Shown piece after piece: positions 3,431 to 61,742 of a DNA stretch of 64,000 bases; the stretch's first letter is position 1; every line of letters begins with the position of its first letter. The position numbers and the translations under genes are program-made. Location of the stretch: the NCBI RefSeq assembly GCF_031769215.1, contig NW_026781958.1:620001-684000 (forward strand), read 5' to 3'. The notes under the pieces are model-generated. The model searched no databases. It saw only the letters and a program-made list of their open reading frames with translations, and was not told where the DNA came from. The stretch is from Ylistrum balloti. Its lineage: Eukaryota.

Positions 3431-29038
<25,608 letters not shown>

Positions 29039-29479
29039 TGTTGGTTAATTAAACCGTCTTCTTTGTGCTCAGATGTCAAGAATTACTAAGGGTTTTGTAT
29101 ACACCGATGAACAGAAGATGATATGCTGTATGTGTTTTCTCGTTTCATATAAGCTTGTTTCCGCATAACCCCATCTTCCTTGTCACAAAAGTAACGCCAT
29201 TATTGACATGGGAGAATTATGGGATTAATAATATGTTTTGGAAAAAAGACTTTACGTGATTAGGTAATCTCTTCTTATTCGCAAAGTATAAACACATAAA
29301 AAATATAAAAATGACTAAATAGTCTCCAGATAAACGAAAAAATGAGTTAATCTACGATGAAATTTACCGGAAGTTACATTATCTCCGTATCATTGTTATC
29401 ATTTATGCACTTCCGGTGAAGACTTCTCTTTTGCCAACACGTTGCATATACCGGTAAACGATTGAAAGGGAAGCTCAAA
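29039..29479. promoter_or_regulatory. Putative bidirectional promoter and 5' UTRs shared by Ena/VASP and SRP9
   Basis: 441 bp between two divergent ATGs, CpG-enriched relative to the flanks. ETS/GABP-type motifs occur in opposite orientations: CCGGAAGT at 29367-29374 and ACTTCCGG at 29409-29416. Confidence 0.75.
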
Positions 29480-29551
29480 ATGACATTTATGACATCGTGG
29501 GAAGAGTTCTCAAAGGCTGCAGAGCGTCTTTATTTAAATGACCCATCAAAA
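29480..29551 (+). CDS. SRP9: SRP9 exon 1 (72 nt)
   Basis: caaaATGACA...TCAAAA|gtaaga. Confidence 0.96.
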
Positions 29552-30474
29552 GTAAGAATACTGCCGTATAAGTTGACATAATCCAATTCAACAATGACAT
29601 ATTTAAACTCGTGTTATGGTGCAATATGGCATTTGCGTTCAGTAGGGTATAAAGCCATAAAGAAATACTTTTGAGTTCGGTGCGCATTTAGAGAATTATT
29701 TGATATTTCCTTTTCACTAAACCTCCGCAAAACTGACGAAAGAAAACATGGTGAAATTTGGCATGTGTAGATGCTTACAAACTTCAACTACATAAATATG
29801 TCACTAATGTTACTTGTTAAATGTAAATTCTGTTATTTAACCCTCGGATCTGTTGAATTGAAATAAGTAAAATTATTTTCCTTGTTAATTGAGGAAAACG
29901 TAACACAAAATCATAAATATGTTCACCTAACACGTCACTTTCTTAATGTTTTAGTTGTACTATTTCTATAAGTTAACCATATTGTTGTTGTTCATATATT
30001 TGTTCATGTTTTAGTGCCGATATACGATCAAGTACAGACATTGTGATGGGAAAATCAATGTCAAGGTGACAGATGACTCTGTAGTAAGTATTTCACTTGA
30101 CTCTAAACATAATCAATGTTTAAACACAGAGTAGATTTTATTAAAGAAACTAATGAGTAACAACACCAGTATTCTCCATCACATTTCATATTGATATACA
30201 ACAAAACAAAAAGTATATCACGATCAACATTCTACATTAGATTGAAGAGTCTAATGAATTTGTAGCAACTTAAGCATTGTATCCAGAAGTTTTATTAACA
30301 TAGTTTAAGTTCTTATTAGGGTATTTGTTATTAGACATAATCTATTATTGTCTGCTTAATCAACATTTTCTGTTTCAGTGTTTACAATATCGTACAGAAC
30401 ATGCACAGGATGTTAAGAAATTGGAAAAGTTGACAAGCTTATTGATGAGACATATGGCATCAAAAGAAAAGTGA
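29480..30474 (+). CDS. SRP9: Signal recognition particle 9 kDa protein, complete: join(29480..29551,30015..30083,30379..30474), 78 aa; missed by the ORF track
   Basis: MTFMTSWEEFSKAAERLYLNDPSK|CRYTIKYRHCDGKINVKVTDDSV|CLQYRTEHAQDVKKLEKLTSLLMRHMASKEK* matches the SRP9 motifs WEEF..AAE.LY..DP, KYRH.DG...KVTD and QDVKK.EK. Exons are 72/69/96 nt, all phase 0 and GT-AG. AATAAA occurs at 30548 and 30556. Confidence 0.97.
30015..30083 (+). CDS. SRP9: SRP9 exon 2 (69 nt)
   Basis: gttttag|TGCCGA...TCTGTA|gtaagt. Confidence 0.96.
30379..30474 (+). CDS. SRP9: SRP9 exon 3 (96 nt including TGA)
   Basis: tgtttcag|TGTTTA...GAAAAGTGA. Confidence 0.95.
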   Translation, partial: CLQYRTEHAQDVKKLEKLTSLLMRHMASKEK

Positions 30475-33468: not shown

Positions 33469-33864
33469 TTTACATACAGATAGAAAACATTAGCTCTGTA
33501 GAGCTAATTTACATACAGATAGAAAACATTAGCTCTGTAGAGCTAATTTACATACAGATAAAAAACATTAGCTCTGTAGAGCTAATTTACATACAGATAA
33601 AAAACATTTGCTCTGTAGAGCTAATTTACATACAGATAAAAAACGTTAACTCTGTAGAGCTAATTTACATACAGATAAAAAACATTAGCTCTGTAGAGCT
33701 AATTTACATACAGATAGAAAACATTTGCTCTGTAGAGCTAATTTACATACAGATAGAAAACATTAGCTCTGTAGAGCTAATTTACATACAGATAGAAAAC
33801 ATTTGCTCTGTAGAGCTAATTTACATACAGATAGTAAACATTTGCTCTGTAGAGCTAATTTACA
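33469..33864. repeat. 39-bp minisatellite, ~10 copies
   Basis: Unit TTTACATACAGATAGAAAACATTAGCTCTGTAGAGCTAA; explains ORF 33309..33986. Confidence 0.95.
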
Positions 33865-36619
33865 AGCAAATATGTGTAACAAGTAATAAACAAAACACAA
33901 GCAAAATATCTACGCATGGTAAAATACAGAAGATTAAAACAATTCTTGTTTTTAAAACAAAGTCTGAAATCTTAAATATTGATTGATTTTATGAAATATT
34001 AAATAGATTTAAAAAAATGGATCCAGAGGGGACATTTTCAGCCTCTATCTGCTGTCAAGCTTATCGCTTTACCATGTACTGACAGAGTGAAAACAAAGGT
34101 CAGTAACTGGGAGATCAGAACAGGTAGAGGAGGAAGGGTGATGGAACAGTAATAAATCTGTCTGAGATGGATCATTATCTATGTAGCAATAATTAACATC
34201 TAGTGAGGATTTATTGTTCTAGTGTCCTATATACGATTGACATACCTAAACACAACATCTGAATGAATCTAAATATCAACTGATCCAACCAAGCCACATG
34301 TCCTATGTGTGTAGCAATACTGATCAATGAGCTTTGTCGAGTAAGTCAAGACCAATCACATTCTGGAGGGGACACTTGTCAAACACTCATCATTTTGGAC
34401 TATGTACTAGTAATATAAGTTGCCTTCTTTATGATATCATTATTAATCCTTAATAAAATATTAAACTAATTTGGATTTTGAAATTATATATTTGAATATA
34501 TATTGGCTTATATCAATGCATCATTGTTTCTAAGCAGAAGTTGTTATTGTCCTTTATGTCCTTTCTGTTCGTCTTTCAACATGTTAATAATTACAAACGG
34601 CTTCAGTAGAACTTAGCACCCAAATTATCGGGAGTTATTTCCCTTTAAACGCACGTTTCACACATTTGATTGGCTTCTATTGTTTCCCAGGAAAGATATA
34701 TCTTTATTTAATAGTCTACATTTATTGTATGAAAAAACGAAAACAGAATTTCCTATCACCAGGAAATTAAAATAATAACAATTTTAAGAACGTTGTACAG
34801 AATTTGTCACGACATCTTATGAGCGCTAAGTGACGTGTGGGTAAACCATTTTTATCAGACTCTAAATAAGGCTGATTTTAGTTCCAAACAAATAACGTAT
34901 GTAATATTGTTTTCTTCTATTTAATTTTATTCCAAAAGTGAGTTGACTAGTGCGCCGCACGGTGGAACTAGGGGAAGCTACCATATCAAATATTCATTTT
35001 TATCATACAGAACTCGACAGAAAGACAAAAGTAGCTCGCAAGGTTTGCCCTTTTTACAGCTGATATTTTAAGACGGTGACCAGAATTCTCTATATACGTC
35101 TCTGGCTACGTATTGTATCTATTGTACTCTTCTCACCATGTATCCTTTTGTGATAATTTGCCAGTCTTTCATAAATTACGAAATTTCAATTCCCAAGCCA
35201 CTTTACAGAACTACAAAAGACGGCACACATGCATGTACTATATACGTGCACACCATATATGCAAGTAAAGTATACACCGGAAGTTAAAGTTATTTCCTAA
35301 AGTCCCTGATATCAAAAAATATCCTTGTCACGAAAATTGATTAATTAAACATGTAAATAAACAAAAGTAATGGTTCAAATCGTAGGCTTACAACAGGTTG
35401 GAATGTATGTACTGTCTATTGCAGATGTATTCGTTGGTATTCATCGCGATACTTTCACCATTTCAGAAGTTGGTTAGTGTTGTGAATTTTCAGTGACATA
35501 TAAGCGCGGTTATGGAGAAACGTGAAACGAAAATCTTAACCACTATACTTCTTTATTTATACTTGTCATAATGCCATTACATACAAAGAAACTGAAGCTG
35601 TACCCTACTTTGTTGAAATTTGCACACGATTTCGTTAAACCTGGTAAAGTAAAAGATACGTTTGATGTTTAATGTTTTTGGTACACAGAAAACTCGTTTC
35701 ATAACGGGAAATAGTCTGCTTACTGCTTATTCAAAACATTGCTGCTACTTCGTTTGAATTTGCATATTGTGAAGAACAAATTGTGATTTTTTTTTTCATT
35801 TTAATACATTGTATACGGAGACAAGTGCGTAAGTTTCCATGTACGTACATGTGCTTTCTTCGTCATGTCATATTATCCTATCTTGTGACATAATTCTTAT
35901 TAATGAAAACAAAATACAAACAACTGTGGTAGTTAGACAACACCGTGGTGTCTTTGTGAGGACTATTTTGTGAGATATAGATCTGAGTATGAGGAAGCCA
36001 GCTGTCCCACACAGTTCAAACTGAAACTCCTTACATATGCATGCGTCATACTTTAGTGATTATACTATCAACATTTTCTAAGGTTCTAATGTAGTTAGAA
36101 TGTTCAGACAACTGAAACATAGACTTGTGGGATGGAATCTTTTGACAATCGATTTTTAAGTTGAAACGCACGAGGAAACAAATCCATTCAAAAACTATCG
36201 ATTTTCCCGTCCATTCCGTTCCTAAAAACCCTTTGCGCAGTGAGTTTAATGATGAATCATGTGTTTTAAAAAATCCAATCTTGTGTAGATGTCATTGCCT
36301 GCAGGAAGCGAAGAGTCTTTCTTTTGACGGAATGAACTGTGATTGTAGCCCACAAGTATATCTAATTCCGCTTGATTCTGTTCGTCTGTAGTTTCAACCA
36401 ATAGATACCAAAATATACATGTACGTGAAAAACTTGTTATGGTGATACTATGGTACTAAGGTTGTACATGTGAAGTGGTGTCAATTTGTAATTTTACGCT
36501 AAAATTCTATAATCTTAACATCGTTTTATACTTCTTTTGAACAATCGTATCTCTAATAGTACTTTATACACATACTTGATATTTCAGATATACAGCTTTT
36601 GTAGTATTTGCCTAACTAC

Positions 36620-39999: not shown

Positions 40000-40751
40000 T
40001 GGAAAAGTTGATCCTGTCACGTACAAGCCATGCCTTATCACGTGACGACCCTATCCTGAACTGATACACTTACTCACGGGATCAGATTGGTTAGAATTTT
40101 TTCGGGCAAAAATACAATTAAAAAAGGGTTTCAGAAATATACACATATGATTCACATCACATATGTAAATAAGGATATTTTATCTGCATAAAAAATATTT
40201 AAAAAATGGTTTGCACTAGCACTTATAAAATTACATTTTCATCTGAAGAAAAATGGTGTATTTTGGGGGTGTTTTTTCTGTGAATTAGAATAATTTAACC
40301 ATATATATAATATTTGTTTTATATAAATATAATACATAATTGGCTGCTTCTTGTCTTGATACAGCAGACGGTCCGCAGCTAGAAAATAATTTTACCATGT
40401 AAGCGGTCCGTTGAAAATCTGTAGTAATGTTTACTAATTCGGGCCGATTACGTAGACTCAAAGATAACATTTCAACACTTTTAAATTGACATTTTAATCG
40501 CTTCATCAATGATCGGTTTATATTCATAGGGGGTGTTCTGTACACATGATGTAGTATACTTGTGCGAACGCGCTTCAATAATATATCCGGATACACTCCG
40601 TTCTGTGCATTAGTATGACAAGGACGAACGAAGGCTAGGCCAAGGACGTGAGGTCACAGCCAGCTGAATCTCGAGCGAGAAGAAAACGTCGAGGTACCGG
40701 GGAGACACACAGAGCTGTCATCCATCCAGAGTCAGTTTAAACAACCTAAAC
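40000..40751 (+). promoter_or_regulatory. Putative glycogen phosphorylase promoter / 5' UTR
   Basis: CpG-enriched region directly upstream of the ATG, with a palindromic E-box TCACGTGA at 40038-40045 and a reverse CCAAT (ATTGG) near 40086. Confidence 0.5.

Positions 40752-61742
<20,991 letters not shown>

Follow-up and report, generated by a model that had tools for sequence, protein, structure and literature searches.

A head-to-head Ena-SRP9 gene pair with a 441-bp spacer, probably the compact ancestral form of a bilaterian-age neighbourhood

The stretch of DNA described here (positions 620001-684000 of contig C101 in a 648-Mb genome; 64,000 nucleotides, hereafter the window) carries the first exons of an Ena/VASP gene, coding for an actin regulator, on the minus strand and the complete coding sequence of SRP9, a housekeeping gene, on the plus strand. 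Sequence comparison places both genes nearest to those of scallops. Their start codons point away from each other with exactly 441 base pairs (bp) between them (29039-29479). This spacing had been given in a preliminary description of the sequence, which also held that neither gene is evident from the open reading frame (ORF) track; exon models, the fit of splice phases and Pfam matches bear out the first statement, and the second follows from the shortness of every exon. Protein searches were done exon by exon for both genes. We consider it probable that the locus represents the compact ancestral form of a head-to-head pair of bilaterian age, with a CpG-rich, conserved spacer of ~440 bp as the shared promoter region.

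SRP9 spans ~1 kb of the window. The coding part of exon 1 (29480-29551, +) runs for 24 codons from the ATG at 29480 to a GTAAG donor, exon 2 (30015-30083, +) adds 23 codons between canonical AG/GT sites, and exon 3 (30379-30474, +) contributes 31 codons and the stop behind a canonical splice site. Exon 3 matches the Pfam family SRP9-21 (PF05486) with 23.3 bits against a cut-off of 21 (E = 7.7e-5). Comparison with an annotated scallop SRP9 (P0005, 78 amino acids) gives 93-100% identity in exons 1 and 3, with exon 3 being 100% identical. The junction of exons 1 and 2 is seen spliced as modelled in RNA contigs of an Argopecten-like scallop. A six-frame search of the whole genome with Pfam SRP9-21 returned no match, the SRP9 exons being too short; they were found instead via stop-to-stop frames, and SRP9 is single copy in the genome.

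On the opposite strand, Ena exon 2 (7066-7231, -; splice sites present) encodes the first half of the EVH1 domain and exon 3 (~3469-3637, -; 3' boundary approximate) the second half. Both match Pfam WH1 (PF00568), with 42 and 63 bits respectively against a cut-off of 22.4 (E = 7.5e-11 and 3.3e-17). The sole VASP_tetra match of the genome (48 bits) is located at C101:611285-611368 (-), 9 kb past the left edge of the window, and a poly-proline exon ORF lies between this match and the EVH1 exons. Given a single VASP_tetra match and EVH1 exons on the same strand, this is the genome's one Ena/VASP gene. It is ~38 kb long, and the longest open frames of its exons in the genome reach 133-138 amino acids.

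The first coding exon of Ena is, by our reading of the sequence, the pentanucleotide ATGAG (29034-29038, -), which supplies Met and two bases of Ser and is followed directly by a GTAAGT donor. Ena exon 2 begins in phase 2 with a single T, the last base of an AGT codon, and ATGAG provides the matching phase-2 end. The start codon has an A at -3 and a good Kozak context. There are four ATGAGGT sites upstream of exon 2, and only the one at 29034-29038 has the consensus donor GTAAGT; the remaining sites between exon 2 and SRP9 are at 7728, 10861 and 26611. The five-nucleotide exon and its flanks do not vary among the window, Pecten maximus and Argopecten irradians, although the introns of these genera can no longer be aligned with the window. 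Furthermore, the A. irradians annotation contains a five-nucleotide coding sequence (CDS) piece at the orthologous place (locus L009, 9545-9549), belonging to a 442-amino-acid protein with WH1 and VASP_tetra domains, and in a gastropod, a nemertean and amphioxus the CDS of the Pfam-confirmed Ena gene starts at an ATGAG|GT that is some hundreds of bases away from SRP9. For molluscs, this would provide the correct Ena first exon and a likely promoter, at a place where gene finders can miss five coding bases.

An alternative Ena first coding exon (19896-19975, -) is located ~9 kb inside intron 1; its phase-2 donor is seen, and its ortholog is annotated in A. irradians (L009, 4403). Ena therefore has a second, internal promoter, and only the canonical promoter abuts SRP9. 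The same two-start layout is found in starfish. Two non-coding islands in intron 1 (18502-18819 and 23164-23330) align between scallop genera while the remaining intron does not, and may be enhancers or further exons.

The intergenic region (29039-29479) is a candidate bidirectional promoter. All 441 bp align among the scallop genera with 87% mean column identity in a three-way alignment, whereas the introns do not align. Conservation is uneven along the spacer: a near-invariant block of ~110 bp (29133-29245, -), a putative Ena core promoter or start of the 5' untranslated region (5'UTR), is more conserved in this alignment than the synonymous sites of SRP9 exon 1, and the least conserved part lies at ~29246-29340. 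No Rfam match was found between 28000 and 31000, and the conserved block is therefore not a known RNA gene. The observed/expected CpG ratio of the spacer is 1.18 versus 0.38 for the window (97.6th percentile), with a peak of 1.2-1.3 at 29.0-29.75 kb in a window that is otherwise strongly CpG-depleted. Such a local peak fits a germline-unmethylated promoter.

With 441 bp between the start codons, both transcription starts fall within this span, barring an additional Ena exon farther upstream. The preliminary description had pointed to two opposed CCGGAAGT motifs between the genes, and these are present at 29367-29374 (+) and 29409-29416 (-). They form part of two perfect 9-mers with the consensus (A)CCGGAAGT, constituting an inverted pair of ETS/GABP-type sites ACCGGAAGT with the distal arm at 29366-29374 (+) and the proximal arm at 29409-29417 (-), 34 bp from it. 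Both arms and most of the intervening 34 bp are invariant in the three scallops. The CCGGAAGT 8-mer occurs 3 times in the window versus 0.41 expected, a count reached in 2/100 shuffles. Its third occurrence (35277-35284) is located in a second non-repeat CpG peak (~1.0-1.1; 34500-36250) between SRP9 and a glycogen phosphorylase gene, and this peak may mark an unannotated promoter.

Two RNA-seq contigs from an Argopecten-like scallop (L010 and L011) begin 2-6 nucleotides after the proximal ETS site; contig L011 carries an Illumina adapter at its 5' end (positions 1-24). Projected by alignment onto the window, these contigs place the SRP9 transcription start zone at 29415-29425 (+). Hence, the ETS pair appears to mark the SRP9 start, with a 5'UTR of ~55-65 nucleotides here. 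A TATAAA at 29287 was considered as an SRP9 TATA box and rejected, as it is not conserved in Argopecten and disagrees with the RNA contig ends.

To place the arrangement in a wider context, SRP9 loci with 10-kb flanks were compared in 15 assemblies. A divergent Ena-SRP9 pair less than 1 kb apart is confirmed in Mollusca, Nemertea and Cephalochordata. The distance between start codons is 441 bp in the window (WH1 exons, phase fit), 457 bp in Pecten maximus (conserved exon, via alignment to the window) and 451 bp in Argopecten irradians (annotated five-nucleotide exon; WH1 and VASP_tetra). It is 660 bp in the gastropod Gigantopelta and 503 bp in the nemertean Tubulanus, with WH1 and VASP_tetra recorded for both, and 522 bp in two assemblies of Branchiostoma belcheri, one with WH1 and VASP_tetra and the other with WH1 alone. 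Ena intron 1 exceeds 10 kb everywhere, and the identity of the neighbour therefore rests on the Pfam record of the annotation or on the five-nucleotide exon; a tblastn search with the EVH1 exons of the window against the 10-kb flanks of every SRP9 locus gave no match. Probable Ena neighbours are found 555 bp from SRP9 in the chiton Liolophura, 544 bp in the hemichordate Glandiceps, and 960 and 963 bp in two Asterias starfish. These are divergent genes of 427-485 amino acids, with 427 in Liolophura, 485 in Glandiceps and 440 and 442 in Asterias, whose CDS begins with a five-nucleotide exon, ATGAG or ATGGG, before GTAAG. By this sequence evidence, the compact divergent pair is probable in Hemichordata and Echinodermata.

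The pair thus occurs in protostomes (molluscs, nemertean) as well as deuterostomes (amphioxus), and therefore predates the protostome-deuterostome split. This had been proposed in the preliminary description, and the annotation comparison agrees, a compact divergent pair being found on both sides. We take the linkage to have been lost in Drosophila and C. elegans. In the outgroup jellyfish Rhopilema, SRP9 is head-to-head with COG3, 189 bp apart (L020, 9811-10001), and is thus also part of a divergent pair, with another partner; in an outgroup sponge, the partner of SRP9 is a zf-CCHC gene.

The gene on the other side of SRP9 provides an internal control for retention. In the window this far-side neighbour is glycogen phosphorylase; the gastropod has YIF1 there, the nemertean an M28 peptidase, amphioxus a sulfatase, and both the hemichordate and the starfish a PP1-type phosphatase. 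On this side there has been reshuffling in almost every phylum, but Ena has stayed in place, with its orientation and a spacing below 1 kb, which argues for selective retention of the linkage. With the opposite SRP9 neighbour as the yardstick, the Ena-SRP9 linkage is kept beyond background.

Two further observations concern the surroundings of the pair in deuterostomes. The PP1-type phosphatase (STPPase_N, Metallophos) lies past SRP9 at L014 16321-22574 (+) in the hemichordate and at L021 16447-23669 (+) and L022 16309-23577 (+) in the starfish, and looks like an ambulacrarian extension of the Ena-SRP9 block. In the brittle star Amphiura, a lamin B receptor gene (LBR; LBR_tudor and ERG4_ERG24 domains) is located immediately downstream of SRP9 (L015, 17671-23277, -). 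Human LBR presumably flanks ENAH, the human Ena gene, which would suggest a wider old LBR-ENAH-SRP9 neighbourhood in deuterostomes. In chicken, LBR, ENAH and SRP9 lie within one megabase (PMC10976558).

An unbiased k-mer comparison of the spacers from seven independent lineages, considering G/C-rich oriented 6-mers, yielded one such word common to 7/7 lineages in a single orientation: CGCCAT on the SRP9 strand. None of the shuffles (0/2000) gave any. Read on the Ena strand, the motif is AAnATGGCG(T)C and matches the YY1/Pho consensus AAnATGGCG(G/T)C. In the window it corresponds to ATAATGGCG (AAnATGGCG class) at 29195-29203 (-), oriented towards Ena and 156 bp from the Ena ATG. The motif occurs once per spacer, facing Ena, in 10/10 Ena-SRP9 intergenic regions examined; its distance to the Ena ATG is 156-282 bp, and 455 bp in starfish. 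A part of Ena intron 1 matched in length to the spacer lacks the motif in each of the species, as do the SRP9 upstream regions of the jellyfish, brittle star and horseshoe crab; the sponge spacer has one copy, in the opposite orientation. Similarity extends beyond the motif itself, as amphioxus (L012, 9702-9728) and hemichordate (L014, 9665-9691) are alike at 23/27 bases around it, and an ETS-like element resembling AAGGAAG is located 10-25 nucleotides downstream in scallops, chiton, gastropod, nemertean and hemichordate. In every lineage, an ORF of 4-13 codons starts from the ATG within the motif (5 codons in scallops; 4-6 in chiton, nemertean, annelid, amphioxus and hemichordate). If transcribed, this could act as an upstream ORF, although further ATGs follow it.

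The distribution of ETS sites is narrower. In the chiton and the nemertean, 52-73 bp separate a minus-orientation ETS core from the SRP9 ATG; in the annelid Paralvinella, a plus-orientation core is located at -81 of that ATG. No ETS site was found at the SRP9-proximal position in the gastropod, amphioxus, hemichordate and starfish spacers. An ETS site or pair at the SRP9 start is thus best described, on present motif matches, as a lophotrochozoan feature, while the predicted YY1-type site is the pan-bilaterian element of the pair. The ETS motifs pointed out in the preliminary description are thus present, but are shared only within lophotrochozoans; the element shared across Bilateria is a different one, and the conserved YY1-type motif goes beyond that earlier idea.

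The YY1-type motif also bears on where Ena transcription might begin. YY1 sites with this orientation in human promoters reportedly cluster just downstream of the start site, an observation attributed to Xi and colleagues in 2007. By analogy, the canonical Ena start would be placed near 29205-29260, ~200 bp from the SRP9 start.

We take mammalian ENAH and SRP9 to be divergently oriented, like their counterparts here. The vertebrate neighbourhood (human 1q42, mouse chromosome 1, chicken chromosome 3) resembles that of the window in that the same two genes are adjacent, and differs in their distance, ~100-125 kb versus 441 bp. The preliminary description had given the human genes as neighbours much further apart than the still compact pair of the window, in line with published data. 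An interval from a human genome-wide association study is labelled by ENAH and SRP9 as the flanking genes of one intergenic region (PMC4879189). In mouse, a transgene inserted between the genes is separated from Enah by 10.2 kb and from Srp9 by 94 kb, giving a spacer of ~104 kb, although the wording "3' of Srp9" in that paper leaves gene orientation unsettled (PMC5389565). The two groups of animals thus present a natural experiment, with a spacer of ~0.5 kb in invertebrates that has been stretched ~200-fold in vertebrates, the linkage remaining unbroken. This contrast allows a direct test of whether old neighbours stay linked through a common promoter or for some other reason.

Ena-SRP9 is a new and well-supported member of an established class, that of conserved divergent pairs. 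The closest parallel is the coregulated 5'-5' type of conserved ancestral microsyntenic pairs (CAMPs), for example HSPD1-HSPE1 (Irimia et al. 2012, PMC3514665): in both cases, two unrelated genes stay side by side in divergent orientation from phylum to phylum, and the intergenic sequence between them is very short and conserved. They differ in that the human ENAH-SRP9 spacer exceeds 100 kb, so that the human pair does not count as a bidirectional promoter. An excess of closely spaced 5'-5' pairs is found among the ancient conserved ones (PMC3514665). Ena-SRP9 is not named in the main text of that study, and a literature search found no paper tying ENAH or SRP9 to microsynteny or to a shared promoter, although supplementary lists may name the pair. 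For very few non-paralogous pairs is there gene-by-gene documentation, from protostomes and deuterostomes alike, of adjacency and divergent orientation at a distance below 1 kb.

At the level of the promoter, most divergent promoters in human are occupied by GABP, which is able to confer activity both ways (PMC2077898); the enrichment of ETS/GABP motifs in bidirectional promoters, cited in the preliminary description, is thus a published result. GABP (NRF-2) and YY1 jointly drive the 405-bp bidirectional promoter of PREPL-C2ORF34 (PMC2713978). The Ena-SRP9 spacer resembles a promoter of this type in its length of ~400 bp, in having no obvious conserved TATA box, in its ETS/GABP and YY1 consensus matches, and in the pairing of one ubiquitous gene with one more regulated gene. 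It differs in being AT-rich (34% GC) with a local CpG peak and no GC-rich island, and in that its predicted sites are at opposite ends of the spacer.

Taken together, the following model is proposed. A GABP-like ETS factor would bind the inverted pair, with SRP9 initiating at the proximal ETS site, and the canonical Ena promoter would initiate ~200 bp away, at a point that immediately precedes the YY1-type motif when read in the Ena direction. This would put both starts a few hundred bp apart, within a single nucleosome-free promoter region. A break anywhere between the genes would harm one promoter or both, which would have held the genes together ever since the ancestor of protostomes and deuterostomes; the vertebrate spacer would have grown to ~100 kb with adjacency retained. 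Only the canonical Ena isoform would depend on the shared region, the internal promoter serving the alternative first exon. That a shared promoter has held the pair together is plausible. A stronger version, in which the spacer is an urbilaterian bidirectional promoter with the YY1-type motif fixed in place and orientation for >550 million years, is put forward tentatively, and we would lean against it at present; if true, the motif would join a very small number of promoter-level elements that can be followed from protostomes into deuterostomes.

Several points weigh against this model. The chiton, hemichordate and starfish neighbours have no Pfam record, and are probably rather than certainly Ena. 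The 10 kb upstream of SRP9 contain no gene in the brittle star and the horseshoe crab. Nor is a neighbour annotated in the annelid Paralvinella, where the only candidate exon is an unannotated ATGAG|GTAGG (L016, 8730-8734, -) 1266 bp from SRP9. This is probably a missed Ena first exon, as a YY1-type motif 176 bp upstream of it (L016, 8911-8916) supports the assignment; the divergent pair is thus possibly present in an annelid, and an unannotated first exon can be flagged in that assembly. The ETS sites, absent from deuterostome and gastropod spacers, cannot have held the pair together everywhere, and since the genes stay adjacent at ~100 kb in vertebrates, linkage in that group does not require a common core promoter. 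The canonical Ena start is placed from motif position and conservation only, and the stretch that separates the Ena ATG from the YY1-type motif contains several other ATGs, an unusual feature in a short 5'UTR. Finally, two independent adjacent core promoters would give the same sequence picture.

The last point leads to the best surviving alternative, which we regard as possible but rather unlikely: two separate core promoters lie back to back, the ETS pair serving SRP9 only and the YY1-type block serving Ena only, and the pair persists mainly as a tiny breakpoint target in which any break would hit one promoter. The layout is compatible with this view, as the ETS pair is at the SRP9 start and the YY1-type block ~200 bp off, facing Ena, with the stretch between these elements (~29246-29340) the least conserved in the scallop alignment; moreover, ETS sites are not common to all lineages that keep the pair. 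However, the spacer aligns over its whole 441 bp between genera with saturated introns, and GABP sites give two-way activity in human assays (PMC2077898). A small target is by itself also insufficient to explain why vertebrate linkage persists despite the large spacer.

The pair could instead be a bystander within a regulatory block, with long-range enhancers of Ena, a developmentally regulated gene, around or beyond SRP9, or SRP9 elements in Ena intron 1. Pulling the genes apart would in this case disconnect enhancers and leave the promoters whole. Regulatory blocks are the second main cause of ancient conserved pairs (Irimia et al., PMC3514665), and both the mammalian spacer of ~100 kb and the conserved non-coding islands in intron 1 could be accommodated. 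Nevertheless, we consider this improbable: the gene beyond SRP9 varies by phylum, which would confine such enhancers to SRP9 itself (~1 kb), and the uniformly sub-kb spacing of invertebrates is a signature of promoter sharing.

It is more doubtful still that the exon at 29034-29038 is not the first exon of Ena, with Ena starting at the internal alternative exon or a different ATGAGGT and SRP9 just happening to lie upstream. A match of five coding bases says little by itself, and the sequence recurs at the three sites given above. Yet the sole GTAAGT donor, the good Kozak context, the invariance in three genera and the A. irradians annotation all point to this exon, and the same exon begins the Pfam-confirmed Ena beside SRP9 in the gastropod, nemertean and amphioxus, making the alternative very unlikely. 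Scallops, amphioxus and hemichordates have conservative genomes, but the least likely explanation of all, a neutral leftover of slow rearrangement with no functional constraint, is at odds with the replacement of SRP9's other neighbour in nearly every phylum while Ena, orientation and sub-kb spacing are kept, and with a motif conserved in place and orientation.

Beyond the pair, the window contains the glycogen phosphorylase gene at ~40700-60000 (+), with Pfam Phosphorylase matches at 54475-54741 and 56275-56670. A CpG peak at 40.0-41.25 kb lies near the likely first exon of this gene. Long open frames at 42.4-44.1 kb within it have no Pfam match and look like a degraded mobile element. Tandem arrays occur in Ena introns and downstream of SRP9, at 20926-23114 (27 bp x 81) and 15480-16312 (36 bp x 23), with further arrays at 6395-6986 (117 bp x 5), 307-978 (29 bp x 23) and 33469-33864 (39 bp x 10). 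The 36-bp array gives rise to a spurious CpG peak.

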